Shown here one piece after another: positions 1-52,304 of a DNA stretch of 64,000 bases. The notes below the pieces were generated by a model. That model was given only the letters and a program-made list of their open reading frames with translations. It was not told where the DNA came from and did not search any database. The stretch comes from Octopus sinensis (Eukaryota). Position 1 is the stretch's first letter; the number at the start of each line of letters is the position of its first letter. The DNA lies in assembly GCF_006345805.1 (NCBI RefSeq), contig NC_043001.1, positions 117,986,001 to 118,050,000 of the forward strand, given 5' to 3'. The position numbers and the translations under genes were made by a program.

Positions 1-66
1 CTTTCATTTTGATTTCCGAGAAACAGAATCTTCACAAGTATTACTTTGTCATTACATACGTTCACT

Positions 67-714
67 ATGTTCATCACACTGTCTCCAAAAGAGATCCGCT
101 ACACTCAAGATTCTATTTCTTCATGTTTTCAAAATGGAAACGAAATACAAGATCTTATTTCAGACATTATCAAGGGTCAAACCACAATTAATGAAATTCG
201 AACAATCAGAGTTTTCCTTAAAGATGAGAAACATTATAGTGTAGACAATAGGAGACTTTACGTGTTCAAAGAAGTGCAACGGTTAAAGCAGCCATATTTG
301 AGGATAGGAGTCAAATTAATAGACGAAGCTGATTTTGACGCAGCTAAGTTCACTACAACGAGCGATGGTTTATATATAAAAGTAAGAAAGGGACCTACAA
401 ATAGAGTACCTAAACATACAACTGCGCCGACAAATATATATTCGTTTAGCGCAAGTCCCAGAAGAACTACATATGATGAAAGTCCCAGAACTGCATATGA
501 AGCAAGTCCCAGACCTACTTATGAAGCAAGTCCCAGACCTACTTATGAAGCAAGTACCAGAACTACTTATGCAACTGGATCTAGTTTCTCCAGTAGCTAT
601 GGAACGGATAACGTTTACAGACTGGACACTCCAAGAGTTCCGAATATTATACGTAAAGAACCCACAAAGCCAACACCAGAGAAATCCGATGATTCTTGGT
701 GTGTAATTCTTTAA
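67..714 (+). CDS. Copy A: uncharacterised 215-aa protein; putative ParB/Srx-like domain + 4x octapeptide repeat + CaaX (WCVIL)
   Basis: Uninterrupted ORF. The track start at 46 is TTG; the first ATG is at 67. Motifs PKEIRYTQDSI, YSVDNRRLYVF, KFTTT..G..IKVR; ends CVIL-stop; AATAAA at 960-965. The domain assignment rests on motif recognition only. Confidence 0.8.
   Translation: MFITLSPKEIRYTQDSISSCFQNGNEIQDLISDIIKGQTTINEIRTIRVFLKDEKHYSVDNRRLYVFKEVQRLKQPYLRIGVKLIDEADFDAAKFTTTSDGLYIKVRKGPTNRVPKHTTAPTNIYSFSASPRRTTYDESPRTAYEASPRPTYEASPRPTYEASTRTTYATGSSFSSSYGTDNVYRLDTPRVPNIIRKEPTKPTPEKSDDSWCVIL
466..561 (+). repeat. 24-bp coding minisatellite, 4 units (copy A)
   Basis: TTYDESPR TAYEASPR PTYEASPR PTYEASTR. 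Confidence 0.9.
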
Positions 715-1800
715 ACAGTCATCCTGATGCTACTGACTCAAAGGAATATCAATTTTAATTTTCTTGAATTTTGCTTGTTTTATTTGAGACGAAAATGGAA
801 CTTAAATTTAAATCTCTGATACTACGGATGTGAAGTAAGAACCTTCTAGTTTTCTTTACCTTTTTGGTAAAATTCTACCACCCCAACCCCACATTTTACA
901 ACAAAAAAAAAAGATTTAAAGTTACCGGTTTTCTTTTTACCTTTCATATTTTTACGGATAATAAAATACATGCGAAGCAAAATATTCAACAAAACACTTC
1001 ACAATGTATACAAATGGTATAAATATTGAAAAAGAAAAAAGAAAATATTAGAAATATTGGGATTTTAATTAAGTTTTCTTTATATATTCAAATTAATCAT
1101 TTAAACGATTTTACTGGTAAATTATGACAAACGGAATAAAATTTGAACATTATCGAAGGGAAGTCGTTCTATCCTCAGACACAGGAAAGCAACAATTGAC
1201 CTTTCATTTATTCTTTTGTCAAGTTATATAAAACATTATATATATATATATATATATATATATAATGTGTGTGTGTATGTATGTATGTATAAAAGGGACC
1301 GAGGTAAAAGAATACGCACACCACCCGTTTACGAAGTAACAAGGACCCTAGCCCCTAACACTGGTTGTACGTGTCCTTTACTTTCGCCATAAAAGGTTTT
1401 TGTTTCATTTAAACAATTTTAAAACGTCTAAATTATAAGTTTATCATTTAATAAACCTCCCCACACGCGGCAAAAGAGTTTCAACCTCTCTGTTACCAAC
1501 GAAAACGATAAGCTTCCTCGATATTATTATTGTGTAACCAGAAGCTTGTTACTTTTAAACGTTCTGGGGGGAAAAAAAACTTCCTTTTCTACACACCCAT
1601 ATTTTTCTTTTTCTTTTTGTTAATGTGTACATCTTAACCTTATGGGGTCATTCATATCGATTCATTTCAAGATGACAACGCCGTTACATAGCAATACTGA
1701 TTACACCCACAAAGGAATCTAAAAAAAAAGATTTTTTGCTTCGAAGTACCCTGAACTCCCAATATGCCACAAATCTCCCTTTTTTTATTTTCAGAAACAA

Positions 1801-2300
1801 AATTTCTTTATAATCCGAAAGCATGCCCTTTGAAAGGTATTTCTATAAAATTTCATTGAAAAAAAACCATTTTCCTAAAAGTTATGTGGGAAAAACTCGG
1901 ATTTCGTGAATTTTCCGAAGTCCTTTCCCCATCCCCGTTGGAAAAGATTTTCCTCACAAATTTCTTTATAATCGTAATCTATGCTGTTTGAAAGGTATTT
2001 CTATAAAATTTCATTGAAGAAACCCCATTTTCCTAAAAGTTACGAGGGAAAAACTCGGATCTTATAAATTTTCCAAAGTCCTCCCCCCACCCTCCCGTTT
2101 CTTTGCGCGCATTTTTTTTTTTTTTCATATTCGTTTCCTGCCCATTGCTTTACATCCATCCCAGTACTTTTTTTTTTGGTGTGTGTGTGTGGAGGGGGTG
2201 ATTTTCATTTCCGGATCAAGATTAACCCGAATTTCTTTATAATCGTAATCTATGCCATTTGAAAGGGACCTATATAAAATTTCACGGATTTGTTCAGTTT
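1801..2300 (+). repeat. Degenerate satellite-like array (units of roughly 120-160 bp)
   Basis: Recurrent AATTTCTTTATAATC..GAAAGGTATTTCTATAAAATTTCATTGAAAAAA..CCATTTTCCTAAAAGTTA..GGAAAAACTCGGAT. Other blocks at about 2900-3000, 15060-15365 and 15600-15700 (+). Confidence 0.8.
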
Positions 2301-3594
2301 GGATCACTGATTTTTTTTATTCACTTTCTTTTTCAAACTTCGTATTTTTCTCACCCAGAACACGATTTACTTTGAACATTTTTGACAAAATTTGGTATTT
2401 TAGAAGTTATTTTGTGTTAAGGTTGTATTTGGGTACTTTCAACCCATCAACGACATGTATTCAGATTAAGAAAGCTACTGCTGCTTGCGATAGTAGTCGA
2501 GGAGGAACAACTTCCGGGTCATCTCTACTAAATGTCACCACTCTGTTCTATGTCCAGCAGCCACCTTTATCCTTTCTAGTCAGCACCGTGCATTCCTTAC
2601 TCTTTCCCTCCCTACTACACTATCAACTAGCAACCAGCCAGCGAACTTGTTACTGCACTGCAGTTACCGTATTTTCAGGTGTATAAGCCGCTATTTTTCT
2701 TTTACCGTCAGGTTTTAATAATGCTATTTTTCATCTAATAAAGACTTTTATATTGACGAAATATGTTTGTTGTTGATTATAGTAAGATAAAATCGTGACA
2801 ATGACAATACATCTCATAGTTAGAAAATAAGGCATTTTGAAACTACATACACGTCAAGGATCTGTTCAGTTTGGCTCAAACACTGAAGAGATCCAATTTC
2901 ATTGCAAGATATCCATTTTCCTAAAGGTTATGAGGGGGAAAATTCGGATCGTGTGAATTTTCCGAAAGTCCTATTCCCGCCCCCGATTCGTTACTGCAAA
3001 TTTTTATTTTCATATTTCATTATTGCACATTTTTTTTTACACCTGTTACACTCGTTTTGATTTCTGTTTTGGTAACCAGTAGTAAAAGTAACATTAACCG
3101 ATAGAATACCAGGTTTCAAAAAATGAGCCCTGGGATCGATTCATTCGACTAAAAATTCTCCAAGGCGGTACCCCAGCATAGCCACAGGCTAATGACTCAA
3201 ACAAGATACAAGCAAAATATACTGAAATGATCTTAACGAAAGAAGGTGCAGTTACTCGGCTGATTAAAACTAGCAGCCAAATCTTATCCTACCTTTTCAC
3301 TTTAACATTTCTGAGAAAATATTACTTTCGTTTTTATTCCAAGAAGTGCTTACTTTAGATACAATGACCAGCAAAACTTTCCAAGTACAAACAGAGATTT
3401 CGTAGAAAAGTAATCTATGGAGCTGTTATAATAAATAGCAGTATTTCACAGGAGATAAATCATTAACTGCCTGATGCGTAATGAACTCAATTACACTGAC
3501 TTATTCCCCTTGTTCACAAGAATTTTAACTTTCATTTTGATTTCCGAGAAACAGAATCTTCACAAGTATTACTTTGTCATTACATACGTTCACT

Positions 3595-4338
3595 ATGTTC
3601 ATCACACTGTCTCCAAAAGAGATCCGCTACACTCAAGATTCTATTTCTTCATGTTTTCAAAATGGAAACGAAATACAAGATCTTATTTCAGACATTATCA
3701 AGGGTCAAACCACAATTAATGAAATTCGAACAATCAGAGTTTTCCTTAAACATGAGAAATATTATAGTGTAGACAATAGGAGACTTTACGTGTTCAAAGA
3801 AGTGCAACGGTTAAAGCAGCCAAATTTGAGGATAAGAGTCAAATTAATTCACCAAGTTGATTCTCACGTAGATAAGTTCACTACAACGACCGATGGTTTA
3901 CGTATAAAAGTAAGAAAGGGACTTGCAAATAGAGTACCTAAACATACAACTGCGCCGACAAATATATATTCGTTTAGCGCAAGTCCCAGAAGAACTACAT
4001 ATGAAGAAAGTCCCAGAACTACATACGAAGAAAGTCCCAGAACTGCATATGAAGAAAGTCCCAGAACTACATATGAAGAAAGTCCCAGAACTGCATATGA
4101 AGAAAGTCCCAGAACTGCATATGAAGAAAGTCCCAGAACTACATATGAAGAAAGTCCCAGACCTACTTATGAGGCAAGTACCAGAACTACTGATGCAACT
4201 GGATCTAGTTTCTCCAGTAGATATGGAACGGATAACGTTTACAGACTGGAGACTCCAATAGTTCCGAATATTATACTTGAAGAACCCACAAAGCCAACAC
4301 CAGAGAAATCCGATGATCGTTGTTGTGTAATTCTTTAA
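3595..4338 (+). CDS. Copy B: diverged 247-aa paralogue; 8x octapeptide repeat; ends RCCVIL
   Basis: Intact ORF paralogous to A and C; ATG at 3595; 23 amino-acid differences outside the repeat block; AATAAA at 4585-4590. Confidence 0.8.
   Translation: MFITLSPKEIRYTQDSISSCFQNGNEIQDLISDIIKGQTTINEIRTIRVFLKHEKYYSVDNRRLYVFKEVQRLKQPNLRIRVKLIHQVDSHVDKFTTTTDGLRIKVRKGLANRVPKHTTAPTNIYSFSASPRRTTYEESPRTTYEESPRTAYEESPRTTYEESPRTAYEESPRTAYEESPRTTYEESPRPTYEASTRTTDATGSSFSSRYGTDNVYRLETPIVPNIILEEPTKPTPEKSDDRCCVIL
3994..4185 (+). repeat. 24-bp coding minisatellite, 8 units (copy B)
   Basis: (T[T/A]YEESPR)x7 + PTYEASTR; accounts for the 32-aa length difference from A and C. Confidence 0.9.
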
Positions 4339-4902
4339 ACAGTCATCCTGATGCTACTGACTCAAAGGAATATCAATTTTAATTTTCTTGAATTTTGCTT
4401 GTTTTATTTGAGACGAAAATGGAACTTAAATTTAAATCTCTGATACTACGGATGTGAAGTAAGAACCTTCTAGTTTTCTTTACCTTTTTGGCAAAATTCT
4501 ACCACCTCAACCCCACATTTTACAACAAAAAAAAAAAGATTTAAAGTTACCGGTTTTCTTTTTACCTTTCATATTTTTACGGATAATAAAATACATGCGA
4601 AGCAAAATATTCAACAAAACACTTCACAATGTATACAAATGGTATAAATAATGAAAAAGAACAAAAAATATATTAGAAATATTGGGATTTTAATTAAGTT
4701 TTCTTTATATATTCAAATTAATTACATACACACACAAATTATATATATATAATGTTTTATATAACTTGAGAAAAGAATAAATGAAAGGTGATATACCAAT
4801 TGTTGCTTTCCTGTGTCTGAGGATAGAACGATTTCCCTTCGATAATGTTCAAATTTAATTCCGTTTGTCATAATTTACCAGTAAAATCGTTTAAATGATT
4901 AA

Positions 4903-6856
4903 TCTCTTATTATAAAAGGCAGATTTTATCTGCCTCCCTTTGTATCTTATAGAAATCTACAATATAGGATTTCTTCAATTACAATTTACCTAGCATTTTT
5001 AAGAGTAGAATGCATCGGGTCGTGCCAGGTCCGCTTTTTAAAATGTCAACCCCAATTAAGCAAAATTTACAGAAAACTCACATTGTGGTGTATGAGTCAA
5101 ATGCTTCTCTTAGTGTGGGATACAGCACACACAAACGCACACACACAGTGTGCAACGAATAAAGTGAAAGTAATTCACTTTCTGTAGTGAGTGACTCTTT
5201 CATTCTGCCTCCCACTTCCTCTTTACACACATAGACACGCAAATATATAAATAAAATTGTAACCTAACGTGCGTGTGTGTGAGTGTGTGTGTGGTGTGTG
5301 TGAGGGTGTGTGTGCGTGAGTGTGTGACAGGAAAGTTTTTTAGGACGAATATAAGACCTATATCCAAGTAGCAGAAAGATCGCCCAAAAGTGTATATAGA
5401 TATTTAAATGTATTTATATATTCATCTATACACAGATGTTTGTATAATGTGTGTGTATATATTTCCACAGAGGTAACCTTTCACTCCATACAAAGTTTTT
5501 TAGGACGAATATAAGATCTAAAGTATATACAAGTAGCAGAAAGATCGCCCAAAAGTGTATGTAGATATTTAAATGTATTTATATATTCATCTATACACAG
5601 ATGTATGTATAATGTGTGTGTATATATTTCTATAGACGTAACCATTCACTCCGCACAAAGTTTTTTAGAACGAAAATAAGATCTAAAGTTATCTCTAAGT
5701 AGCACAAAGATCGCCCAAAAGTGTATATAGATATATAAATGTATTTATATATTTATCTATGCACACATGTATGTATAACGTGTGTGTATATATTTCCATA
5801 GAGGTAACCATTCACTCCATACAAAGTTTTTTAGGACGAAAATAAGATCTAAAGTTATCTCTAAGAAACAGAAAGATCGCCCAAAAGTGTATATAGATAT
5901 TTAAATGTATTTATATATTCATCTATACACACATGTATGTATAATGTGCGTGTATATATTTCCATAGAGGTAACCATTCAATCCATACAAAGTTTTTTAG
6001 GACGAAAATATTTATATATAAAAGAAAGGTTGTGTGTCTGTCTACTCCGATTTAGATTCCTAACTACTCCCACATTTTGCGATGCAGTTTAACCAAAACC
6101 GGGTATCTTATAGTCGTGATTCAAATCGAGCCCTTCTGGGTATTAGCGCGCGTCTACGATGAGTCTATGATTTTACAAATAATTTACCATCATTTTTTTC
6201 CATTTTAATGCATATTTTTTTAATAAAGGGAAGTAACTCTCAAACTTCACACCAATATGCGTGCTCATATGCGACGTAATATCACATCAGCAGCATTTCC
6301 TCACACCCTCCTTGCACTTGGCGAAGGCAAAATACCAGGGGATGAAAATGGTAATATTGCCATCGATTCCATTTGTACCATTGTTAAGACGCCTTCTGAT
6401 CTCAGAGATGCAGTGTTCCCAGATCTACAAGCTAATTATCAGAATATGGATTGGATTGGCAAAAAGGCTATACTGGCCCCGAGGAATAAAACTGTTCACC
6501 ATATTAATGATGAAATGCTAAAACTCATTCCTGGGGAAGTCTATGTATATCAGTCTATCGATACAACTCCTGACCCAGAGGACGTCACATCAACTATCCA
6601 ATAGAGGTACTCAATTCCTTTGAGCACCCCGGACTACCACCACACTTTCTCAAACTTAAAGTTGGTGCCCCTATAATGCTCATCAGAAATTTGGTTCCCC
6701 CAAAACAATGCAATGGCACACATTTGATCGTTAAGTCCTTATCTCCCACCGTAAACTTATATCAATATTTGCCTGAATAATCATCATAATTCAGTGCAAT
6801 CATTAACAGTACTTTCAAGCAATTCAGCCCCGAGCAACGCCGGGCAATTCTGCTAG
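4903..6856 (+). mobile_element. Non-autonomous Helitron with a PIF1-type helicase remnant
   Basis: 5' A|TCTCTTATTATAAAAGG; 3' hairpin CCCGAGCAACGCCGGG then CTAG|T at 6853-6856. Remnant at about 6250-6755 reads ...AILAPRNKTVHHIN...[21 protein letters not shown]...CNGT with frame disruptions. Absent from the paralogous flanks of A and C. Confidence 0.85.
5332..6010 (+). repeat. About 165-bp tandem repeat, about 4 units, inside the Helitron
   Basis: AAAGTTTTTTAGGACGAA recurs at about 5332, 5492, 5657, 5823 and 5989. Confidence 0.9.
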
Positions 6857-7904
6857 TGTATGTATAAAAGGGACCGAGGTAAAAGAATACGCTCACCACC
6901 CGTTTTCGGCGTAACAAGGACCCTAGCCCCTAACACTGGTTGTACGTGTCCTTTACTTTCGCCATAAAAGGTTTTTGTTTCATTTAAACAATTTTAAAAC
7001 GTCTAAATTATAAGTTTATCATTTAATAAACCTCCCCACACGCGGCAAAATGTTTCAATCTCTCTGTTACCAACGAAAACGATAAGCTTCCTCGATATTA
7101 TTATTGTGTAACCAGAAGCTTGTTACTTTTAAACGTTCAGGGGGAAAAAAAACTTCCTTTTCTACACACCCATATTTTTCTTTTTCTTTTTGTTAATGTG
7201 TACATCTTAACCTTATGGGGTCATTCATATCGATTCATTTCAAGATGACAACGCCGTTACATAGCAATACTGATTACACCCACAAAGGAATCTAAAAAAA
7301 AAGATTTTTTGCTTCGAAGTACCCTGAACTCCCAATATGCCACAAATCTCCCTTTTTTTATTTTCAGAAACAAAGGGAGGGTAGTGCTGGGGGAGCTTGG
7401 AATTACTCCCGAAAGTCCCAGGTCCACCACCACATAAACGGCTCCTTTCTACTGAAAATGGAAGATTTGGCTGCTATTTCTAGCACGCGCTGCTACCACG
7501 TAACAGCTATTTGCGATAGCAGCATGTCCTTTATCGCAAATACCTGTTCAGTGGTAGCAGGACGTGCTAGAAATACCAGCCTAATCGGTTCATAACAACG
7601 TTTCACATTGTTTCGCTTTAATTACAACTAGGGAGGGGGAGGGGGGTGATCTGCTGTTCCTGTCATTATTAAAGTGTTGCCTAAAAATGCACCTGGTTTT
7701 TACCCCTTGATTTGCCTTTTCCCACTGGTCAACGGTTTCTGTAGATTGTATTTGTATAATGTCACTTCCTGCTTTTTCTTAAAATACTGCGAAATGTGCT
7801 CCACATACAAAGAAGTTACATTTTAATTCAAACGAATTAACCAGTTCTTGAATCTTTCAGAAAATTAATAAAAGAAAAGTGGTGCGCTTTCGTATGTGAA
7901 AATA

Positions 7905-8570
7905 ATCTTTTGTCACTAAACACTTTCAAACTTCGGACACGGGTGGAAAGGCGTGATTCAACTGAATAAAATGACTGCCGTCGTTTGTCAACAAGAACTT
8001 CCGGCGGTGTATATTTCGTCTGTCACTGTTAATGACAACCCTTAACCACCCTTTCCTTACTGTATTTCTGTTGAGATGCTCTCTGTTTCTTTCAATTACT
8101 TTAAAAAAACAAAGAATTTAGTAAAGTAACTTAGTTATCATTCAGCTGGTTTTAGGAATATAGATTGTGACTAAGGATTGGTGGAAGATTTTAATTCAAA
8201 ACTTATGAAAACAAGACATTTGTACTCAGAGCCACAGCCGGTTTCAGCCGGGTTGGTCACGAAAGGGTTAAAACTAGTACAAACGCACGATATGTCATAA
8301 ATAGCAATTACAAACGAAAAACCCACCGCCAATAGTTTTTGTTGACAAACAACAGCAGTAATTTTATTCAGCTGAATACACGTCATTGATTGGTTGAAAT
8401 TACCGAAATACGAAAACTTTGAGACGTGAAATAACTTCGTAAATAGGTTTTTCACAAAAATGCTAAGAGTAAAAGATATTTCATATGACACATTCTACCA
8501 GTGTCCGAAGTTTGAAACTGTTTAGTTACAAAAGATTATTTTTTAAATCTGTCGGTCAAAAGGTAAAGAT
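7905..8570. mobile_element. Foldback MITE split by a TTAA-flanked piggyBac-like MITE (about 8043-8270); duplicated at about 18580-19245
   Basis: Arms match the element at 11131-11740. The inner element ends GAAAGGGTTAA and matches the family at 53002-53230. Confidence 0.6.
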
Positions 8571-8604
8571 CCGCAACCAGTTGCTCAGACAGCCGGCACA
8601 TACC

Positions 8605-8835
8605 TATTTCTTTACTACCCACAAGGGGCTAAACACAGAGGGGACAAACAAGGACAGACGTAGGTATTAAGTCGATTACATCGACCCCAGTGCGTAACTG
8701 GTACATAATATATCGACCCCGAAAGGATGAAAGGTAAAGTCGACATGGGCGGAATTTGAACTCACAACGTAACGGCAGACGAAATACCGCTAAGCATTTC
8801 GCCCGGCGTGCTAACGGTTCTGCCAGCTCGCCGCC
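8605..8835 (-). mobile_element. tRNA-like SINE with an 18-bp TSD
   Basis: TSD AGACAGCCGGCACATACC at 8587-8604 and 8836-8853; B-box-like GTTCAAATTCC on the minus strand. Confidence 0.85.
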
Positions 8836-9544
8836 AGACAGCCGGCACATACCATTTCGCTAGCCACAAAGGGAGCACAGGATGACAGTCAGCCCAAACC
8901 GTCGCTATGCTGTATCTCTTCTTTCCTCTGTCTGTCTCTCTTATTAAGAAGATGTATGTATATTGTGCTAAGATTCGTTATCAAAAGTTATCCTTACTGA
9001 GAAGAAGCAGTCAAAAGCAACCACCACATACAATCACCAAACATCTCCACTACTTAACACCGTCCAAGTTAACCTGCTTCACCTTTTCAACTGACATGAA
9101 ACACTACGAGGAAAAGCAACCATTTTAATTTAGCCAAAAAAGAGAAAAAATCGATTGCTATGAAAACGCGTAAAATTTGAGGGTTAATAATCTTAAATCT
9201 TTAGTTACAGTTTCTCATTCAAACTACATAATAAGCAGAATTGTCAGATTAAGACAGTGGGGTGTTTTGAGGGAGATTTGGCTGCTGTTTCTACTAGGTC
9301 TAGCTACCATGTAGAAGTCTCCCTTATTGGCTCATACATACATATATGCATAAACTCGAAATAAAATACATAAAGCAACAGGCGTCAAATACAAATGCCG
9401 AGGTTCATGCAGTGTCATGAGCCCAAATATTTCCAACTTCTAGTCTAATGCGAGCCCAGAGCAATCTCTTATCTCTTACACTATTTCAGTATTATGTCTG
9501 TATTGTAATGCGAGATAATACTTTCAGTTTGAAAGAAGTCTGTC

Positions 9545-9583
<39 letters not shown>

Positions 9584-9584
<1 letters not shown>

Positions 9585-10141
9585 CTTATATAAAATCCGT
9601 TCTGTCTGCTTGTGTGTGTGTGTCTTCTCTGATCTCGGGCATCCTCCATCCGATTGCGCTCAAATTTGATATGTAGATACCGACGGTATCAGGGCATGTA
9701 TAAGTCTTGAAACAACTACAAAAATCGATTCCAGGTGAGAATGCGATCAATAAAGCCGTTATTTCCGTCAACCTGTACATAACTGCACCTTCCATTTTTT
9801 TGTTGGTTTTGTACTGCTTAAAGACACGTTTCGTTCCTGCCAAGTTTACTGTTTAAACCGTGTCTGTGTTCTCCCAGTTAAAAGCCTATTCATTACTGGT
9901 ACTTTAAAATCTTTGGTTGCATATTTGTGTGAATAAAATCGTTTTTCTTTGGAATAGAAAAAAGTTTATCGTTATTTCTTCTTTTGCTGGTGTCTCAAAT
10001 TTAGATTAAATCAGTGTTTCCCAAATGTGAGGCCTATGGGACGGACGGACAAGTTTTGAGAATATTTGGTGTCAATGTTTGACAACTCAGCACCGTCCAT
10101 TGGACAGGGGGCGTTTTGCTCGTGTGTGTATGTATATATAT

Positions 10142-10176
<35 letters not shown>

Positions 10177-10992
10177 TCCTTATGCATTCTAAAACCGAGT
10201 TATAGATTTTCACGAATGGGGTATCAAAAGATTCAGTACTATTTCGGTAACAAATTAAGCAGGTATGTTCCATACCATTCTTATAAAAATGATAACTCTG
10301 TCCAAATTGGTGTGCTAAACACAAATTGGTGTTTCTGTAGAGCTTTAAAATTTTCAAGTGAAACAAATGGTATGTGCTGCTCAGGTGGTCAGGTAACATT
10401 GCCAGCACTACCAGCTCCTTCTCAACCACTTATGGATCTTCTAGAAGGCACTTCCATCCAGTCAAAGGATTTTCTGAACAATATCAGGTAATACAACTCT
10501 GCATTTCAAATGACATCGTTTGGTGCATCTAAGAAGATAAACACGAGTTTACGCTGACGTCAAAGTTCAAGGGCAAGTCCATCACCTTATTGGTTCCCTG
10601 TGGCCCAGAAATGAACAACCACAGATCCTCCAAATTTACTTTATGAGTGATGTAGGACAACAAACCCGAAGGAGGTATTAAATTTTCCGATGATGGGTCG
10701 TGTTAGACACAGCGTTGACTGCTGCAAAAGAGAGTATATCCACTGACAGCTTTTCTGTGCGTTCAAAACTCACATGACCCCCATCCCAAATTTTCCATGA
10801 AGGGTTAGGGCCTGAAATACTCCAAACGGATGCATAGCATGTTGCTTTGTCGAATTAGCGCAGCATTTACTCCACAAATGTTTTGTTGTCAATGCTTCAC
10901 TTTCCCATATCACCTCTTTCAACATAATCTGTAATATGTTACATACAAACTATGCCATTTTAATCCCGAGCAACGCCGGGTGCCTCTGCTAG
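9584..10992 (+). mobile_element. Non-autonomous Helitron with a remnant of the N-terminal Rep-helicase region
   Basis: 5' A|TCTTATATAAAATCCG; 3' CCCGAGCAACGCCGGG..CTAG|T. Remnant reads CFCRALKFSSETNGMCCSGGQVTLP...SKDFLNNIR*YNSAFQMTSFG. Confidence 0.85.
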
Positions 10993-11130
10993 TAAACTCA
11001 TATAAGCACATATATCCACATGCATTTATATATTAACGATGTACGCAAATACACGACAGGTAAACATAATACTGAAGTACGCATGAAGTAAACACATAAA
11101 GATAAATATAACAAACAACGCAGAGACAAA

Positions 11131-11740
11131 GCATCTTTACCTTTTGACCGACAGATTAAAAAATATTTTTTTGTAACTAAACACTTTCAAACTTCGGACA
11201 CAGGTAGAATGTGTCATATAAAATATCTTTTACTCTTAGCATTTTTGGGAAAAACTTACATTTACGAAATTATTTCACGTTAAAGTAGTCCTATTTCGGT
11301 AATTTCAACCAATCAATGACGTGTATTCAGCTGAATAAAATTACTGCCATTGTTTGTCAACAAAAACTATCGGCGGTGGGTTTTTCCTTTGTCACTGTTA
11401 TTTGTGACATCGTTCGTGCGTTTGTACTGGTTTTAACTTGAGGGTTTTAAGGTTAGGATTTTAGGGTTGTCATAAATAACAGTGACAAACGAAATATACA
11501 CCGCCGGAAGTTCTTGTTGACAAACAACAGCAGTAATTTTATTCAGCTGAATACACGTCATCGATTGGTTGAAATTACCGAAATAGAACAACTTTAACGT
11601 GAAATAACTTCGTAAATATAAGTTTTTCTCAAAAATACTAAGAGTAAAAGACGTTTTATAAGACACATTCTACCAGTATTCGAAGTTTGAAAGTGTTTGG
11701 TTAAAAAAAAATATTTTTCAAATCTGAGACAAAAGAAACA
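11131..11740. mobile_element. Foldback MITE with inverted arms of about 270 bp
   Basis: 11131-11415 is the approximate reverse complement of 11469-11740. Confidence 0.7.
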
Positions 11741-12099
11741 GTAAGATGATACATGTTGATTTTATTAGGTATTTCCATTTATTTAGAAACCTACAATGAA
11801 CAGGTCAGACGCTAAACTCTAAATTCCACAGGGTACAACCTTAAAGTTAACATCGCTCCGCTGAATTATAGCCGATTTTCAGATTTTTTACTGTGTTTTA
11901 AAAAATGCTTACTTTACGAATGAAAAAAACTAGATCCGAAAAAGGTTTTTAACAAGATCCGATGTATCATGGTGAGAGAAACAAATTCATAAATAAGGTG
12001 TTGAATATAGTTTCACTGTGGGAAAAATGTTAAGGTCAATTTAGCTGTTGCTTTTAGCGCATCACTACAATTGGGATCTTTAAAAAAACTCATACCTTT

Positions 12100-12415
12100 T
12101 AGGAGAATGGGTTTTTTTTTCAATGAAATTTTATAGAAATACCTTTCATACGGCATACATTACGATTATAAAGAAATTTCTGGGGAAAATCTTTTCCAAG
12201 GAGGTGGGGAGAGAACATCGGAAAATTTACAAAATCCGAGTTTTTTCTCATAACTTTCAGGAAAATGGGTCTTTTTTTTTTTTTCAATGAAATTTTATAG
12301 AAATATCTCTGCAACGGCATACATTACGATTATAAAGTAATTTGTGGGGAAAATCTTTTCCGAAGGGTGGGGAGAGGACTTTGGAAAATTCACAAGATGC
12401 AAGTCATTCCCTCAT
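12100..12415 (-). repeat. Same satellite in inverted orientation
   Basis: TTTTTCAATGAAATTTTATAGAAATACCTTTCA is the reverse complement of the unit above; present twice. Confidence 0.8.
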
Positions 12416-12439
12416 AATTGTATATATATATATATATAT

Positions 12440-13603
12440 ATGGGATACCTCGAGAAAATACTATACCGGATGACACTCGAGAAATATGGAAACACCTTCG
12501 CCACCTATATCCATAACAACTGGAAAAGATACCTCGATGACTGTTTCATCATCTGGGACAAAGGCATAGAGAAACTTGAGGAATTTAAAATTCTATTAAA
12601 TGGAATAAATGACAATATACAATTCACGATGGACCACAACGAAAAAGAATTACCATTTTTAGACATCCTCATTAAGAAAACCGGCAACAAAATAGAGACA
12701 GATATCTACTATAAACCGACAGACTCTAAACAGTACCTACCCTTTGATTCATGCCACCCACGACACACTAGAATGAATGTCCCTTTTTGTTTAGCTAGAA
12801 GGATTTGCACCATAATATCAGACACAAACACCCGACACACACGTCTCCAGGAACTTAGAACCACACTCACAAATAGAAACTATCCACAGCCCCTAATAGA
12901 CAGTGCAATCCAACGGGTACTTAAATTAAGTATAGAAGACCTGAGACAAACAAAACCAAAAAAGAAAGAACAATTAAAAACCCTTCCCTACATCTCTACA
13001 CACAACCCACTCAACAATGAGGCCTTCAACACCATACTACAAAGCACAGCCCTACTAAAGGGAGACCCAAAGATGAACCGGATCCTCGAAACACACACCA
13101 TCATTAAAAGTAAACGGCAACCAAAATCCTTGAAAAGGATTTTAACCCAAGCTACACTGCACTCAACATCAACCACAAAACCAGCAGTTAGAAAATGTGG
13201 AAGGCCCAACTGCGGAATCTGTGTCATCTTGAAAGAAGGATCAGAATTTATACTGGAACAAGGCCACCAGTTCACCATTAGAACAAACTTCACCTGCGCA
13301 TCAGAAAACTTAATTTACGTCATAACATGCGCAGGCTGCAATAGGCAGTATATAGGCCATACAAAAAATAGCTTACGTAACAGGATGGCGGTGCATAAAT
13401 CACAAATTAGAAACCCTGATTACCGCAAAATACCGGTCAGCGGACACATAGATAGATGTGCTGGAAATGTAAATCCGAAATTTACAACTAACCCGCTCTA
13501 TAAATTCAGTGACAACGCAACCTTCACACAACGCCAAAATAAAGAACTATATTTCATAAAAAAATTTAGACCAAGTTTAAACACCCTGGGCCAGGAATAC
13601 TAA
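12440..13603 (+). CDS. 5'-truncated Penelope-like element ORF: RT C-terminal half, thumb and GIY-YIG endonuclease
   Basis: WKRYLDDCFIIW, LPFLDILI, IYYKPTDSKQYL..SCHP; Zn-knuckle-like CGRPNCGIC; NLIYVITC..C..QYIGHT..LRNRM..H. It begins abruptly after a (TA)n tract, so the track's N-terminus from 12344 is read-through of satellite and microsatellite. Confidence 0.9.
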   Translation: MGYLEKILYRMTLEKYGNTFATYIHNNWKRYLDDCFIIWDKGIEKLEEFKILLNGINDNIQFTMDHNEKELPFLDILIKKTGNKIETDIYYKPTDSKQYLPFDSCHPRHTRMNVPFCLARRICTIISDTNTRHTRLQELRTTLTNRNYPQPLIDSAIQRVLKLSIEDLRQTKPKKKEQLKTLPYISTHNPLNNEAFNTILQSTALLKGDPKMNRILETHTIIKSKRQPKSLKRILTQATLHSTSTTKPAVRKCGRPNCGICVILKEGSEFILEQGHQFTIRTNFTCASENLIYVITCAGCNRQYIGHTKNSLRNRMAVHKSQIRNPDYRKIPVSGHIDRCAGNVNPKFTTNPLYKFSDNATFTQRQNKELYFIKKFRPSLNTLGQEY

Positions 13604-13771
13604 AACAAAAGATAAGTCCTCCGAAAAGGAGAACCAAATTTCACCACGGCCGCTACTTCAAACAGACACTCACTCTGACGGAAATATGCCTTAGTAAAAA
13701 AGGAAAGAAATTCTTTCGTGCAAATCTCACCCTGATACATACGATACAGCTAAGGGTCAGACCCGACTCTG

Positions 13772-14235
13772 ATTGGTCAACAAGTTGATGACGTCTAGCT
13801 CTGCTAGAATGGACAGGATACAAACAGGGGACAGTCATTAGTCAGAATATTGATGACGTCCTTTTCTGCTTGAATAGTCACCTAACAAGTACAGACAGGT
13901 GGCAGATCTAATGTAGCTATAAGTCGTGATTGGGCAGAATCTGGATGACGTCCCGCTCTGCTTGACTAACGAAGCGACTGGTCAAAACAGGAAACAAACA
14001 AGAGGCAGATATAATGCAGCGATTGGTCAAAATAATGATGACGTCCCGTTCTACTTGACTAACGAAGCGACTGGTCAAAACAGGAAACAAACAAGAGGGA
14101 GTTATAATGCAGCGATTGGTCAAAATAATGATGACGTCCCGTTCTACTTGATTAAAGCCACCTAACGAAATGATTGGTCAAAACATTGATGACGTCACGC
14201 TACGCTAGATTGACCACCTAACAGGCATTATAAAA
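13772..14235 (+). promoter_or_regulatory. Six ATTGG-N12-TGACGT composite sites followed by TATAAAA
   Basis: ATTGG/TGACGT pairs at 13772/13789, 13837 (ATTAG)/13854, 13929/13946, 14022/14039, 14115/14132 and 14173/14190 (full TGACGTCA); TATAAAA at 14229-14235. Confidence 0.7.
13961..14146 (+). repeat. 93-bp tandem duplication within the Penelope promoter region
   Basis: CTTGACTAACGAAGCGACTGGTC at 13961 and 14054. Confidence 0.9.
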
Positions 14236-14672
14236 CCGAGCATTTCACAAAAACTCACTAGAACCACCCAGCGAACTTCCACCATGGGTCATCACAATTG
14301 CTTAAGGTAAAAATGAATTCCTCGCTCTTTCGGAACATCAATCTTCTGTATTGACCGCTTTCCACCACTTTGATCTGTTTTTTGTATTGAATACGTATCG
14401 CCACCGTGGGCCACTGCATCGAACACTTTGAACATATACTTCAAACTATATATCAACTATACATGAACTATATATCAACTATACATGAACTCTAAGATGT
14501 CTGACTCCGTTGTGTATTATAAATGAATTTCTTGTGTTTGACGGCATGAGCTGTCTCTTTTTATATATAACTTTTTTTGATAAAGTTCATTTCAGGAACT
14601 GAAACATGTTATAATGTATATATAAAAATTAAAAATTGTATAATACAGCAGCATTTTCGAACTTCATTTTTT

Positions 14673-14857: not shown

Positions 14858-16130
14858 TATATATATATTATATATATATATAATATATATATATATAAAG
14901 AGAGAGAGAGAGAGAGAGAAAGTAATAAAGAGTGAATGAGAATAATTGAAAATGAAACAAAATTGAAGCCAAATAACTAAAAATTATAGAAAGTGGGTAG
15001 AAATAAACACTACGTAGTGTAGTAGTACTACGCTAGGGTATGTGTAGAAAGTTGAACGTGATTTCGGAATATAATGAGGAAAAATTCGGATCTTGGGGAT
15101 TTTCCGAAAGTTCGCTACCAACATCAAGATTTTCCCTACAACTTACTTTATAGTTGTAATGAATGCCGTTTCAATAGTATTTCTATAAAATTTCATTGAA
15201 AAAAACCCATTTTCCTAAAACTTGTGAGGGAAAAACTCGGATTTTGTGAATTTTCCGAAGTTCTCTCCCCACCGAGTTGGATAAGATTTTCCACACAAAT
15301 TTCTTTATAATCCCAAAGCATGCCGTTTGAAAGGTATTTCTATAAAATTTCATTGAAAAAACCCCAGTTACCGTATTTTCAGGTGTATAAGCCGCTATTT
15401 TTCTTTTACCGTCAGGTTTTAATAATGCTATTTTTCATCTAATAAAGACTTTTATATTGACGAAATATGTTTGTTGTTGATTATAGTAAGATAAAATCGT
15501 GACAATGACAATACATCTCATAGTTAGAAAATAAGGCATTTTGAAACTACATACACGTCAAAGATCTGTTCAGTTTGGCTCAAACACTGAAGAGATCCAA
15601 TTTCATTGCAAGATATCCATTTTCCTAAAGGTTATGAGGGGGAAAATTCGGATCGTGTGAATTTTCCGAAAGTCCTATTCTCGCCCCCGATTCGTTACTG
15701 CAAATTTTTATTTTCATATTTCATTATTGCACATTTTTTTTTACACCTGTTACACTCGTTTTGATTTCTGTTTTGGTAACCAGTAGTAAAAGTAACGTTA
15801 ACCGATAGAATACCAGGTTTCAAAAAATGAGCCCTGGGATCGATTCATTCGACTAAAAATTCTCCAAGGCGGTACCCCAGCATAGCCACAGGCTAATGAC
15901 TCAAACAAGATACAAGCAAAATATACTGAAATGATCTTAACGAAAGAAGGTGCAGTTACTCGGCTGATTAAAACTAGCAGCCAAATCTTATCCTACCTTT
16001 TCACTTTAACATTTCTGAGAAAATATTACTTTCGTTTTTATTTCCAAGAAGTGCTTACTTTAGATACTATGACCAGCAAAACTTTCCAAGTACAAACAGA
16101 GATTTCGTAGGAAAGTAATCTATGGAGCTG

Positions 16131-16170
16131 TTATAATAAATAGCAGTATTTCACAGGAGATAAATCATTA
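16131..16170 (+). promoter_or_regulatory. Possible TATA/Inr-like core promoter of copy C (equivalent at about 3426-3465 for copy B)
   Basis: TATAATAAATAG about 35 nt before TCATT and about 170 nt upstream of the ATG; weak evidence in an AT-rich background. Confidence 0.25.
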
Positions 16171-16299
16171 ACTGCCTGATGCGTAATGAACTCAATTACA
16201 CTGACTTATTCCCCTTGTTCACAAGAATTTTTACTTTCATTTTGATTTCCGAGAAACAGAATCTTCACAAGTATTACTTTGTCATTACATACGTTCACT

Positions 16300-16947
16300 A
16301 TGTTCATCACACTGTCTCCAAAAGAGATCCGCTACACTCAAGATTCTATTTCTTCATGTTTTCAAAATGGAAACGAAATACAAGATCTTATTTCAGACAT
16401 TATCAAGGGTCAAACCACAATTAATGAAATTCGAACAATCAGAGTTTTCCTTAAAGATGAGAAACATTATAGTGTAGACAATAGGAGACTTTACGTGTTC
16501 AAAGAAGTGCAACGGTTAAAGCAGCCATATTTGAGGATAGGAGTCAAATTAATAGACGAAGCTGATTTTGACGCAGCTAAGTTCACTACAACGAGCGATG
16601 GTTTATATATAAAAGTAAGAAAGGGACCTACAAATAGAGTACCTAAACATACAACTGCGCCGACAAATATATATTCGTTTAGCGCAAGTCCCAGAAGAAC
16701 TACATATGATGAAAGTCCCAGAACTGCATATGAAGCAAGTCCCAGACCTACTTATGAAGCAAGTCCCAGACCTACTTATGAAGCAAGTACCAGAACTACT
16801 TATGCAACTGGATCTAGTTTCTCCAGTAGCTATGGAACGGATAACGTTTACAGACTGGACACTCCAAGAGTTCCGAATATTATACGTAAAGAACCCACAA
16901 AGCCAACACCAGAGAAATCCGATGATTCTTGGTGTGTAATTCTTTAA
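16300..16947 (+). CDS. Copy C: 215-aa protein, coding sequence identical to copy A
   Basis: Same translation as A in the ORF track, and I saw no nucleotide difference in the CDS; AATAAA at 17194-17199. Confidence 0.8.
   Translation: MFITLSPKEIRYTQDSISSCFQNGNEIQDLISDIIKGQTTINEIRTIRVFLKDEKHYSVDNRRLYVFKEVQRLKQPYLRIGVKLIDEADFDAAKFTTTSDGLYIKVRKGPTNRVPKHTTAPTNIYSFSASPRRTTYDESPRTAYEASPRPTYEASPRPTYEASTRTTYATGSSFSSSYGTDNVYRLDTPRVPNIIRKEPTKPTPEKSDDSWCVIL
16699..16794 (+). repeat. 24-bp coding minisatellite, 4 units (copy C)
   Basis: Identical to the block in copy A. Confidence 0.9.
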
Positions 16948-17468
16948 ACAGTCATCCTGATGCTACTGACTCAAAGGAATATCAATTTTAATTTTCTTGA
17001 ATTTTGCTTGTTTTATTTGAGACGAAAATGGAACTTAAATTTAAATCTCTGATACCACGGATGTGAAGTAAGAACCTTCTAGTTTTCTTTACCTTTTTGG
17101 TAAAATTCTACCACCTCAACCCCACATTTTACAACAAAAAAAAAAAGATTTAAAGTTACCGGTTTTCTTTTTACCTTTCATATTTTTACGGATAATAAAA
17201 TACATGCGAAGCAAAATATTCAACAAAACACTTCACAATGTATACAAATGGTATAAATATTGAAAAAGAAAAAAGAAAATATTAGAAATATTGGGATTTT
17301 AATTAAGTTTTCTTTATATATTCAAATTAATCATTTAAACGATTTTACTGGTAAATTATGACAAACGGAATAAAATTTGAACATTATCGAAGGGAAGTCG
17401 TTCTATCCTCAGACACAGGAAAGCAACAATTGACCTTTCATTTATTCTTTTGTCAAGTTATATAAAAC

Positions 17469-17516
<48 letters not shown>

Positions 17517-19278
17517 GTGTGTGTATGTATGTATGTATAAAAGGGACCGAGGTAAAAGAATACGCACACCACCCGTTTACGAAGTAACAAGGACCCTAGC
17601 CCCTAACACTGGTTGTACGTGTCCTTTACTTTCGCCATAAAAGGTTTTTGTTTCATTTAAACAATTTTAAAACGTCTAAATTATAAGTTTATCATTTAAT
17701 AAACCTCCCCACACGCGGCAAAAGAGTTTCAACCTCTCTGTTACCAACGAAAACGATAAGCTTCCTCGATATTATTATTGTGTAACCAGAAGCTTGTTAC
17801 TTTTAAACGTTCTGGGGGGAAAAAAAACTTCCTTTTCTACACACCCATATTTTTCTTTTTCTTTTTGTTAATGTGTACATCTTAACCTTATGGGGTCATT
17901 CATATCGATTCATTTCAAGATGACAACGCCGTTACATAGCAATACTGATTACACCCACAAAGGAATCTAAAAAAAAAGATTTTTTGCGTCGAAGTACCCT
18001 GAACTCCCAATATGCCACAAATCTCCCTTTTTTTATTTTCAGAAACAAAGGGAGGGTAGTGCTGGGGGAGCTTGGAATTACTCCCGAAAGTCCCAGGTCC
18101 ACCACCACATAAACGGCTCCTTTCTACTGAAAATGGAAGATTTGGCTGCTATTTCTAGCACGCGCTGCTACCACGTAACAGCTATTTGCGATAGCAGCAT
18201 GTCCTTTATCGCAAATACCTGTTCAGTGGTAGCAGGACGTGCTAGAAATACCAGCCTAATCGGTTCATAACAACGTTTCACATTGTTTCGCTTTAATTAC
18301 AACTAGGGAGGGGGAGGGGGGTGATCTGCTGTTCCTGTCATTATTAAAGTGTTGCCTAAAAATGCACCTGGTTTTTACCCCTTGATTTGCCTTTTCCCAC
18401 TGGTCAACGGTTTCTGTAGATTGTATTTGTATAATGTCACTTCCTGCTTTTTCTTAAAATACTGCGAAATGTGCTCCACATACAAAGAAGTTACATTTTA
18501 ATTCAAACGAATTAACCAGTTCTTGAATCTTTCAGAAAATTAATAAAAGAAAAGTGGTGCGCTTTCGTATGTGAAAATAATCTTTTGTCACTAAACACTT
18601 TCAAACTTCGGACACGGGTGGAAAGGCGTGATTCAACTGAATAAAATGACTGCCGTCGTTTGTCAACAAGAACTTCCGGCGGTGTATATTTCGTCTGTCA
18701 CTGTTAATGACAACCCTTAACCACCCTTTCCTTACTGTATTTCTGTTGAGATGCTCTCTGTTTCTTTCAATTACTTTAAAAAAACAAAGAATTTAGTAAA
18801 GTAACTTAGTTATCATTCAGCTGGTTTTAGGAATATAGATTGTGACTAAGGATTGGTGGAAGATTTTAATTCAAAACTTATGAAAACAAGACATTTGTAC
18901 TCAGAGCCACAGCCGGTTTCAGCCGGGTTGGTCACGAAAGGGTTAAAACTAGTACAAACGCACGATATGTCATAAATAGCAATTACAAACGAAAAACCCA
19001 CCGCCATAGTTTTTGTTGACAAACAACAGCAGTAATTTTATTCAGCTGAATACACGTCATTGATTGGTTGAAATTACCGAAATACGAAAACTTTGAGACG
19101 TGAAATAACTTCGTAAATAGGTTTTTCACAAAAATGCTAAGAGTAAAAGATATTTCATATGACACATTCTACCAGTGTCCGAAGTTTGAAACTGTTTAGT
19201 TACAAAAGATTATTTTTTAAATCTGTCGGTCAAAAGGTAAAGATCCGCAACCAGTTGCTCAGACAGCCGGCACATACC

Positions 19279-19508
19279 TATTTCTTTACTACCCACAAGG
19301 GGCTAAACACAGAGGGGACAAACAAGGACAGACGTAGGTATTAAGTCGATTACATCGACCCCAGTGCGTAACTGGTACATAATATATCGACCCCGAAAGG
19401 ATGAAGGTAAAGTCGACATGGGCGGAATTTGAACTCACAACGTAACGGCAGACGAAATACCGCTAAGCATTTCGCCCGGCGTGCTAACGGTTCTGCCAGC
19501 TCGCCGCC
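19279..19508 (-). mobile_element. Same SINE insertion in the copy C flank
   Basis: Same TSD and same position in the duplicated segment. Confidence 0.85.
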
Positions 19509-44600: not shown

Positions 44601-45247
44601 ACCCTAGCGGTTGCGGGAACCTGTGGAAGAGGTAGACCCAGGAAAACCTGGAATTTTTGGTCTCACCGAGGAAATGATTAGAGACCGAGACCTTTGGAAG
44701 TATGCTGTGCGTGAGAAGACCCAGCAGGACAAATGAGACCACAACCCGTGGCCTCTACCTGGGATGTAGCCAGTCCACTTATGCATACCTTTCCTTCTTG
44801 GGACACAAAACTCTACTTGCGAAGACCTGTTGAGGCAAGTGAAAATGAAAATCAAAATCGATCAACATCAATGGAAATTGTAGCTGTGATACAAGAGAAC
44901 CGTCCGAACGTGGCCATTGCCAATACCACCCTGACGGGCCTCTGTGCCGGTGGCATGTAAAAATTACCATCCGTGGCCGTTGCCAGGCTCGCCTGGCCTC
45001 CGTGCCGGTGGCACGTAAAAAGCACCGTCCGATCATGGCCGTTTGCCAGCCTTGTCAGGCACCTGTGCCGGTGGCATGTAAAAAGCACCCGCTACACTCT
45101 CGGAGTGGTTGGCGTTAGGAAGAGCATCCAGCCGTAGAAACATTGTCAAATCAGACTGGGCCTGGTGCAGCCTTCTGGCTTCCCAGACCCTAGTTGAACC
45201 ATCCAACCCATGCTAACATGGAGAACGGACGTTAAACGATGATGATG
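41659..45247 (+). mobile_element. Near-full-length RTE-clade LINE (APE endonuclease + RT + Cys-rich insert), disrupted
   Basis: VGTLKGR..DICCIQEVRWRG, AGDFNG, KGDALD..NYRGIKLL, QFGFVPGKSTTDAIF, FVDMEKAFDRVP, GVHQGSVLSPLLF, ELLYADD, CSIC..C..C..H..C; ATATG at both ends; (GAT)n tail; frameshifts and stops. Confidence 0.9.
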
Positions 45248-48398: not shown

Positions 48399-48683
<285 letters not shown>

Positions 48684-50883: not shown

Positions 50884-50959
50884 CTTTTTCAGGAAGTTGA
50901 ACTAAAAATAGTCTTTTGTGTTCTTTGGGTTTTGTTATGTGAGCTGGTACATAAGGATA
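50884..50959 (-). CDS. NUDT21: NUDT21/CPSF5 internal exon, 76 nt
   Basis: tttttag|YPYVPAHITKPKEHKRLFLVQLPEK|gtaagt; phase-compatible with both neighbouring exons. Confidence 0.95.
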
Positions 50960-51251
50960 CTAAAAACAGAAAAAATTAAACAAAATGTATCCTTCGTGGA
51001 TATTTCACAATATAAAGTTCAGGCTAACAATATTCTGTTTGTCAAAAACCTAAGATCAGAATTACAGCAATTAATTTCTTCTTAAATAAAAGCATTTATT
51101 ATTTCTTTAAAATAGCTACTTGATGGCTGGTCTCTTTTTTTCACTAATACAAACCACTACTAACAAGTTACTGTTTAGCCTCAAGTCAGGCCTGATTGTG
51201 CAGACTTTACAAAAAGGTTTCTAGCTGTAGCCATCCAATCTTTTTGTATAT

Positions 51252-52139: not shown

Positions 52140-52304
<165 letters not shown>

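Follow-up and report, generated by a model that had tools for sequence, protein, structure and literature searches.

An Excess of Amino Acid Replacements between Young Gene Copies Encoding a Predicted ParB/Srx-Fold Protein in Octopus sinensis

Introduction

Tox-ParBL1 is a domain with a predicted ParB fold that was described at the C-terminal tips of bacterial polymorphic toxins (Zhang, de Souza, Anantharaman, Iyer, and Aravind 2012, PMC3482391). By definition, it possesses an N-terminal Ser/Thr, which classical ParB lacks, and a [NT][RT][RT] motif equivalent to the DGHHR of ParB toxins; its members are delivered by HINT, RHS, or FilH modules, lie adjacent to Imm-SUKH or Imm44, and include scattered eukaryotic, among them metazoan, proteins (PMC3482391). 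Another system, ToxB, is a ParB-CTPase-fold ATPase toxin found at CdiA C-termini, the toxicity of which needs the arginine of its phosphate-binding motif; it is devoid of DNA-binding domains, is toxic also in plant cells, and is neutralized by an immunity protein (bioRxiv 10.64898/2026.05.05.722872). Here, we report the analysis of a 64-kb stretch of the Octopus sinensis genome, hereafter the window (GCA_006345805.1, chromosome CM016863.1, approximately 117,986,001–118,050,000), which contains three copies (A, B, and C) of a gene predicted to encode a Tox-ParBL1-type domain followed by a linker of repeats and, at the C terminus, a CaaX box. Copy B is separated from A and C by 25 nonsynonymous differences and a single synonymous one, in a setting of nearly identical flanks.

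The 2012 study already listed eukaryotic Tox-ParBL1 proteins; the literature that we searched contains neither a later study of them nor a report of their rapid evolution.

Results

Nearly All Differences between B and A/C Replace Amino Acids

The gene is a single-exon open reading frame (ORF), of which the 64-kb window contains the three copies and no others (Table 1). As the coding sequences (CDS) of A and C are the same, B was compared with one sequence, A/C, outside a block of 24-nt repeats, that is, over 546 coding nt. The two differ at 26 nt in 24 codons. Twenty-five of these nucleotides, in 23 codons, change the encoded residue, one (ATA to ATT, codon 85) is silent, and 23/182 nonrepeat residues differ between the A and B proteins. 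The step is single in all altered codons but two. An earlier note, made from the letters of this DNA, had given the same counts, which our recount reproduced, and had described the reading frame and the IRYTQDSI, DNRRL, and CVIL motifs as retained, which we confirmed in A, B, and C.

Several tests agree that silent changes are too few. The NG86 method (S = 120.8 synonymous and N = 425.2 nonsynonymous sites) yields a synonymous divergence (dS) of 0.008 and a nonsynonymous divergence (dN) of 0.061, which puts dN/dS at 7.4 (Fisher P = 0.011). Permutations that keep the mutation type predict 5.8–6.1 silent changes (P = 0.006–0.008 for one or none), and those that keep the trinucleotide context predict 4.5–4.9 (P = 0.018–0.030). 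A codon model of dN/dS (ω) gives the same answer for the one pair to which it was applied, A/C versus B: under a pairwise Goldman–Yang maximum-likelihood model, ω is 7.7–10.1 (2ΔlnL of 6.8–9.0, P = 0.003–0.009), with a profile-likelihood lower bound of ~1.5.

Noncoding DNA provides an independent yardstick. Nonsynonymous divergence between B and A (25/425, 5.9%) far exceeds that of their noncoding DNA (16/2019, 0.8%; P = 3.6 × 10⁻¹⁰), while dS (1/121, 0.8%) does not differ significantly from it. This confirms that coding divergence is above noncoding divergence, as had been claimed. The figure of 0.6% on which that claim was based holds for the upstream flank, where the six differing sites reported between 2661–3594 (B) and 15365–16299 (C) were found again together with one 1-nt indel, but this is the lower of the two flanks, the downstream one showing ~1.3% B-specific change. 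Over ~2 kb of flanking DNA, dN is 4.5–8 times the noncoding divergence (P from 7 × 10⁻⁶ to 4 × 10⁻¹⁰), the lower value being obtained when the more diverged downstream flank alone serves as yardstick (~4.5 times, P = 7 × 10⁻⁶). Since ω exceeds 1, dS equals the divergence of the flanks, and dN lies well above it, positive selection between young paralogues, whether diversifying or directional, is probably the best explanation of the replacement excess.

Three other candidates were rejected. GC-biased gene conversion does not apply, because weak-to-strong (7) and strong-to-weak (10) changes reveal no bias. Hard-wired A-to-I editing sites would involve A↔G changes, which amount to only 4/26. Selection on an overlapping alternative frame is not tenable either, since the +2 ORF at 3923–4261 is the repeat read out of frame.

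The Changes Are Confined to One Tract and Spare the Predicted Core

The differences are unevenly distributed along the gene: the first 156 nt are free of them, 3751–3925 contains 17 (8 at 3849–3872), and 4192–4323 contains 9. The resulting hyperdivergent tract is bordered by 223 nt on its 5′ side and 168 nt on its 3′ side that are free of B-specific change. At the protein level, the first 52 codons and every family-invariant residue are unchanged. All 15 differences in the domain lie at residue 53 or beyond, 7 of them within residues 86–93, and as a group they occupy high-entropy columns of the family alignment (P = 0.004). The changes thus appear to spare the predicted nucleotide-binding/catalytic core formed by IRYTQDSI, DNRRL, and KFTT..G. 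From A/C to B, the net charge shifts from +5 to +10 in the domain, from 0 to –6 in the linker, and from +1 to –2 in the tail.

We assigned polarity at both the protein and nucleotide levels using as outgroups two Octopus bimaculoides homologues (P0002 and P0005), the O. sinensis paralogue P3 (on genomic sequence L002), and an Argonauta homologue (L005). H56, G81, and K197 are derived in A/C; H53, S90, A111, and most of the tail changes (R209, E219, I222, L228, and R242) are derived in B. The earlier note had placed the change in copy B, which holds only in part, because derived residues fall on both the A/C and the B lineage. This points to mutual divergence of two protein types rather than merely to a fast copy B. 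Two positions were hit in both lineages. N99, an Asn in 94 of the 114 aligned family members, is Ser in A/C and Thr in B, and S103, a Ser in 85/114, is Tyr in A/C and Arg in B (codons 99 and 103, at 3889–3903 in B and 361–375 in A). Both residues are part of a KFTTxNxGxS motif, and their independent replacement may signal a shift in enzymatic function in this octopus lineage.

Other comparisons within the family give ordinary ratios. Between A and P3, ω is 0.52 and 30% of the differences are silent; between A and the Argonauta homologue, ω is ~0.17. Orthologues of two other members in O. sinensis and Octopus vulgaris differ at 3/197 and 3/272 residues, with 0–1 differences in the domain. In the mussel Sinanodonta woodiana (CM100986.1, L006/L007), a tandem array of 115-aa ParBL1-like genes with an 8.8-kb period encodes two identical proteins and a third that differs by 6 residues clustered at 50–78; it exhibits 8 nonsynonymous versus 3–4 synonymous changes (ω of 0.5–0.7), with flanks diverged by 2–4%. 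Set against these relatives, the octopus A/C–B pair stands out as an exception in its family.

The Locus Has a Mosaic History

To what extent could the history of the locus, rather than selection, account for the tract? We compared the flanks of the three copies, taking A's upstream flank from the genomic sequence surrounding LOC115211823 (L001), which is 100% identical to the window over 1–14338. Upstream, A and B differ by 3 substitutions (1117 nt), A and C by 4 (934 nt), and B and C by 6, so that this flank, unlike the CDS, does not pair A with C. B-specific change is higher downstream (~1.3%, 12/902, that is, 5/384 plus 7/518) than upstream (0.2%, 2/934; P = 0.006). C's duplication unit (15365–20169) is unbroken, while B's consists of 2479–4722, a rearranged portion (4723–6856), and 6857–9509, and it follows A's unit. 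This layout identifies A and B as products of a tandem duplication and C as a third copy at a distance of 12.7 kb. Within these units, 7357–8857 and 18030–19530 are identical over 1.5 kb, yet the last ~430 nt of homology (9081–9509 versus 19754–20169) have diverged by ~13%, with 39 transitions and 21 transversions over 8857–9509. Such a 13% layer beside 1.5 kb of identity implies an old duplication overwritten by recent conversion or reduplication, that is, concerted evolution. Each duplication unit is directly preceded by an array of a 158- to 166-bp repeat, which is also present within the rearranged B unit; these arrays are plausible substrates of the unequal recombination that produced the copies.

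Several observations weigh against positive selection. With one silent change, the 95% interval on dS is wide (0.0002–0.046), and the comparison involves two distinct sequences, A/C and B, in one assembly. When changes clustered within 10 nt are merged, 12 events remain, and the test based on coding DNA only becomes borderline (P = 0.03–0.05). Four B-specific substitutions lie within 19 nt of noncoding DNA (4651–4669), near the end of homology at 4722, which means that clustered mutation or microconversion operates here outside the CDS too. Finally, the layers of 13% and 0–1.3% divergence make the history of the locus a mosaic one, in which an imported tract is possible. The diversifying selection claimed in the earlier note is supported in part: an ω above 1 and a dN 4.5–8 times that of the flanks speak for positive selection, diversifying or directional, but this is qualified by a conversion history that overlaps with selection and by a sample of three sequences from one genome.

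Concerted evolution makes a mosaic origin the most serious rival, although we regard it as unlikely. Segment 3751–4323 of B (or of A/C) would have been imported by ectopic conversion or recombination from a diverged paralogue or allele, while its surroundings were homogenized, so that coding DNA and flanks would differ in history instead of recording a burst of selection in place. The sharp edges of the divergent block are in keeping with this, as are the grouping of A with C in the CDS but not upstream, the heterogeneity of flank divergence, the repeated conversion or reduplication implied by the 13% layer next to 1.5 kb of identity, and three residues (H53, H86, and H91) common to B and the Argonauta homologue. 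However, an ordinary donor from the family would bring ~30% silent differences (P = 0.0011 for at most 1/26), differences that are single-step in nearly all codons are not expected from an old donor, no donor was found in the ~105 kb searched, and P3 does not match the states of B. The specific proposal that the tract is a relic of the old 9–13% duplication layer was rejected, since it predicts 8–11 silent differences in the tract where there is one (P ≤ 0.004). Moreover, an imported tract with a 25:1 ratio would still require positive selection, in the lineage of the donor.

Clustered complex mutation (multinucleotide or templated) in a redundant duplicate under relaxed constraint would need about a dozen events nearly all of which happened by chance to be replacements, and we find this improbable. 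It draws on the 8 changes in 24 nt, on several pairs or triplets of changes 2–6 nt apart, on the share of C↔G changes (7/26), on the noncoding cluster at 4651–4669, and on the P value of 0.05 reached by the coding-only test when events are merged at ≤10 nt. Even so, merged events remain ~4.5 times denser in coding than in noncoding DNA (12/546 versus ~10/2019, P = 6 × 10⁻⁴), none of them is purely silent (0/12, and still 0 when up to 23 events are counted), and the null that preserves trinucleotide context continues to give P = 0.02–0.03. Relaxed constraint also fits poorly with the preservation of the frame, start, stop, CaaX box, and invariant residues, and with independent hits at the same conserved codons (N99 and S103) in both lineages.

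An assembly or consensus artifact, such as mispolished or collapsed repeats or haplotypes placed in tandem, is very improbable: although the locus is repeat rich, A and C have identical CDS, 1.5 kb is without differences, A and B are fused in a RefSeq model, and exact-protein look-ups found no independent assembly on record that encodes either A or B, errors would not spare silent sites or preserve the frame, long-read errors are mostly indels whereas B displays 26 substitutions and an exact in-frame expansion of 96 nt (4 units), and the adjoining 1.1 kb is 99.7% identical to A, indicating a low local error.

The Encoded Protein Has a Predicted ParB/Srx-Fold Domain and a CaaX Box

Sequence searches with the octopus protein were uninformative: Pfam returned no model at E < 1 but chance matches only, neither ParBc nor a helix-turn-helix (HTH) among them, and the PDB likewise gave chance matches only. 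A profile of the first ~117 residues, on the other hand, found 197 relatives by word index and, when the search was exhaustive, 3562 representative clusters, mostly small bacterial or metagenomic proteins. An AlphaFold (AF2) model of the domain based on 114 sequences has a pLDDT of 89.5 and a pTM of 0.80. When this model was compared with the PDB using Foldseek, the top ~30 matches were all ParB, Noc, Srx, SbnI, KorB, or SerK structures, with probabilities of 0.9–0.99 but modest E values (~0.01) and TM scores (~0.46). Among the 114 aligned members, N61-R62-R63-L64 is invariant and D60 is present in 112, S16 is found in 96 (with Thr in 7 more), and position 13 is Thr or Ser in 95. The model becomes disordered beyond residue ~112, where low-complexity repeats, among them the disordered SPRTTYEE linker, make up the sequence, with no HTH or dimerization domain such as those of ParB-CTPase clamps.

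The bacterial members display the architecture of toxins. In many long bacterial proteins, the domain is at the extreme C terminus, and in five (P0034, P0055, P0062, P0097, and P0200) a PT-HINT module that scores above the Pfam cutoff lies directly upstream of it; another (P0222) combines RHS, PT-HINT, and the domain, the latter at residues 897–1002 of 1006. On a metagenome contig, P0055, a 202-aa PT-HINT plus ParBL1-like protein, is followed by a 127-aa ORF that overlaps its stop codon (L003, 8001–8992), and both are found together again on another contig (L004). This ORF has no Pfam match and is a candidate for a new immunity protein. The neighbors of the PT-HINT plus ParBL1-like orphan cassette on these two contigs include LRR and TIR-TPR-LRR proteins. 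The octopus proteins have no delivery module, HINT, RHS, or signal peptide, and we saw no candidate partner gene beside the octopus copies. By its fold, its Ser, its arginine motif, and the HINT/RHS context of its bacterial relatives, the octopus N-terminal domain matches the published definition of the Tox-ParBL1 family, an assignment that rests on the published description, fold, and motifs rather than on a type sequence or curated model.

At its C terminus, the protein ends in CVIL, which is found also in octopus paralogues, O. bimaculoides, and O. vulgaris. CaaX endings (CxxL/M/C, mostly CxxL) occur in 17 of the family members collected, including the tunicate P0128, and this recurrence suggests that an anchor to membranes belongs to the conserved architecture in animals. 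The octopus protein is predicted to be prenylated and may be enzymatically active. Next to the CaaX box, B has an extra Cys (RC-CVIL instead of SW-CVIL), as do the paralogues P0003 and P0005, and this residue could add a palmitoylation site. Outside animals, four proteins of the dinoflagellate Amphidinium carterae (P0007, P0008, P0014, and P0038), which carry long low-complexity N-terminal extensions, are nearer to the octopus protein (E values of 10⁻³³ to 10⁻⁴²) than most bacterial members. This patchy distribution in eukaryotes may point to transfer from one eukaryote to another or to more than one acquisition.

Annotation and Neighborhood of the Copies

None of the three copies is annotated as such in RefSeq. 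Instead, LOC115211823 (XP_036358910, 230 aa) joins residues 1–134 of A to the last 96 residues of B, spanning 67–4338 of the window (10001–14272 of L001) across a 3579-nt "intron" with AC..CA ends, both of which lie inside the 24-nt repeat. This O. sinensis protein (P0001) had been a candidate for a natural A/B recombinant, which was rejected because it is a gene model from the same assembly that crosses a 3.6-kb "intron" without GT-AG. With two paralogues fused and C unannotated, the tally of O. sinensis members of this family is wrong, as are estimates of their expression.

The window is AT-rich, with abundant microsatellites and fragments of retroelements. On the minus strand, 3′ coding exons of CPSF5/NUDT21 (NUDIX_2) are found at 48552–48683, 50885–51049, and 52206–52298, more than 30 kb from the A/B cluster, although a 265-aa RefSeq isoform of this gene is annotated antisense over the whole cluster and reaches 7 kb upstream of the window. 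A Penelope-like retroelement has left a remnant between the B and C units, namely a 419-aa ORF (12344–13603) whose C terminus carries a GIY-YIG domain. In a GC-richer part of the window, at 42820–44681, two adjacent ORFs with RVT_1 and PHD-finger matches correspond to a frameshifted non-LTR retroelement.

Table 1. Features of the three gene copies and their duplication units (positions in the window, except where L001 is given)
Feature	Position	Strand	Description
Copy A	67–714	+	215 aa plus stop; CDS identical to that of C
Copy B	3595–4338	+	Complete ORF in one exon (247 aa plus stop) with ParBL1-like domain, linker of 8 repeat units, tail, and CaaX
Copy C	16300–16947	+	215 aa plus stop; CDS identical to that of A; no protein on record
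ParB/Srx-fold (Tox-ParBL1-type) domain, B residues 1–118	3595–3948	+	IRYTQDSI (residues 10–17) and DNRRL (residues 60–64) the same in all copies
Hyperdivergent tract of B	3751–4323	+	All 26 nonrepeat differences plus repeat-block differences; 0/156 versus 26/390, P = 0.0002
Densest cluster	3849–3872	+	8 changes in 24 nt; LIDEADFDAA to LIHQVDSHVD (residues 85–93), loop after strand 80–84; one step per codon
Repeat block of B	3982–4176	+	8 units of 24 nt (SPRTTYEE), 4 in A/C; expansion by 96 nt keeps the frame; YEA replaced by YEE in the units
Repeat block of A	454–552	+	4 units; equivalent in C at 16687–16785
C-terminal tail of B	4177–4323	+	9 nonsynonymous, 0 synonymous changes; most derived states are B's (versus O. 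bimaculoides)
CaaX box CVIL	4324–4335 (A 700–711, C 16933–16944)	+	Geranylgeranylation type, X = L; all copies
Upstream flank of B	2479–3594	+	3 substitutions and 1 indel versus A's flank over 1117 nt
Downstream flank of B	4339–4722	+	5 B-specific substitutions, 4 clustered at 4651–4669; AATAAA at 4585
Displaced continuation of B duplication unit	6857–7374	+	Corresponds to A 1282–1801 and C 17530–18049; 7 B-specific substitutions, 2 indels
158- to 166-bp repeat arrays	1800–2089, 12112–12417, 15071–15366, 5332–6010; L001 8266–8886		

Discussion

Our preferred explanation, positive selection, can be embedded in a tentative scenario. A, B, and C are young tandem paralogues of O. sinensis, with a noncoding divergence of 0.3–1.3%, kept alike by gene conversion. 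They encode a protein made of a Tox-ParBL1 domain, a disordered SPRTTYEE linker, and a CVIL end for predicted geranylgeranylation, and this protein would be cytosolic and membrane anchored. After duplication, selection for amino acid change would have acted on both the A/C and B lineages, leaving untouched the predicted nucleotide-binding/catalytic core (IRYTQDSI, DNRRL, and KFTT..G) while reshaping the loop at residues 85–93, nearby residues of the domain's C-terminal half, the length and charge of the linker, and the tail by the lipid anchor. The likeliest driver would be coevolution with a fast-changing partner, either an inhibitor or target encoded by a pathogen or an antidote or partner encoded by the octopus itself. 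Alternatively, the two protein types may have subspecialized to different membranes or targets.

We infer a role in conflict, and the kind of selective agent, from the nature of the domain. The earlier note had offered host–pathogen or gamete-recognition genes as parallels; the former agrees better with a domesticated bacterial conflict (toxin) domain and a cytosolic prenylation signal, and a gamete role is less fitting for a protein that has no signal peptide. In its most elaborate form, which we consider speculative and rather unlikely as a whole, A/C and B would be parts of a eukaryotic conflict system, in which a domesticated, NTP-dependent ParB-like toxin domain, tethered to membranes by geranylgeranylation via a tunable acidic linker, runs an arms race against a fast-evolving antagonist. 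The latter would be an inhibitor or target from a pathogen, as in innate immunity, or the self-encoded antidote of a selfish toxin–antidote element, while concerted evolution would homogenize everything but the contact surface. If the conflict reading is true, cephalopods would join the animals that repurpose bacterial toxin domains for their own conflicts, the locus would be an animal counterpart of the diversification of bacterial toxins and immunity proteins, and it would offer a compact, workable system in which to study how selection withstands gene conversion. In any case, a young cluster with a dN/dS near 8, an intact core, and one remodeled loop points to a likely surface of contact with a partner, and A/C and B are two natural protein variants available for comparison.

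How does this locus compare with known systems? Like Tox-ParBL1 domains, the octopus domain has the N-terminal Ser (S16) and the N61-R62-R63 motif, and its bacterial relatives are C-terminal, after RHS/PT-HINT, and followed by a small ORF. In contrast to them, each octopus protein stands alone and carries the domain at its N terminus, in fusion with the repeat linker and the CaaX box. ToxB, which may or may not belong to the ParBL1 subfamily, similarly uses a ParB-fold domain as the tip of a toxin; it is delivered between bacteria, whereas the octopus protein is endogenous and probably membrane tethered. With sulfiredoxin and the N-terminal domains of ParB, Noc, and KorB, the octopus domain shares the fold (7bnr, 7ol9, 6ky4, 3hy2, and 1xw4 in the Foldseek comparison, at the probabilities and modest TM scores given above) and an arginine-containing motif at the N terminus of the central helix. 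It differs from them by the lack of sequence-level similarity, of an HTH and a dimerization domain, and of the Srx Cys motif GGCHR, in place of which it has DNRRL.

The evolutionary pattern also has precedents. Accelerated coding evolution in young duplicates, in which exons have diverged several times more than their noncoding surroundings, dN/dS is well above 1 between very young tandem or segmental duplicates, and conserved and hypervariable parts are combined in one protein, is known from morpheus/NPIP in hominoid segmental duplications, crotaline venom PLA2 genes, conotoxins, and abalone lysin. Fast exons with slow flanks in young duplicates are thus a known pattern, but the cephalopod CaaX-anchored family in which we find it is essentially unstudied. 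The evidence in those cases comes from numerous paralogues, species, or alleles, in contrast to two sequence types in one genome here, and the octopus protein is predicted to be intracellular and lipid anchored rather than secreted. An analogy in this last respect may be guanylate-binding proteins, CaaX-anchored NTPases that are prenylated immune effectors encoded in tandem gene clusters. Although their fold is unrelated and an immune role of the octopus protein is at present conjectural, both would combine a nucleotide-dependent enzyme fold and a C-terminal CaaX box with a tandem cluster of genes.

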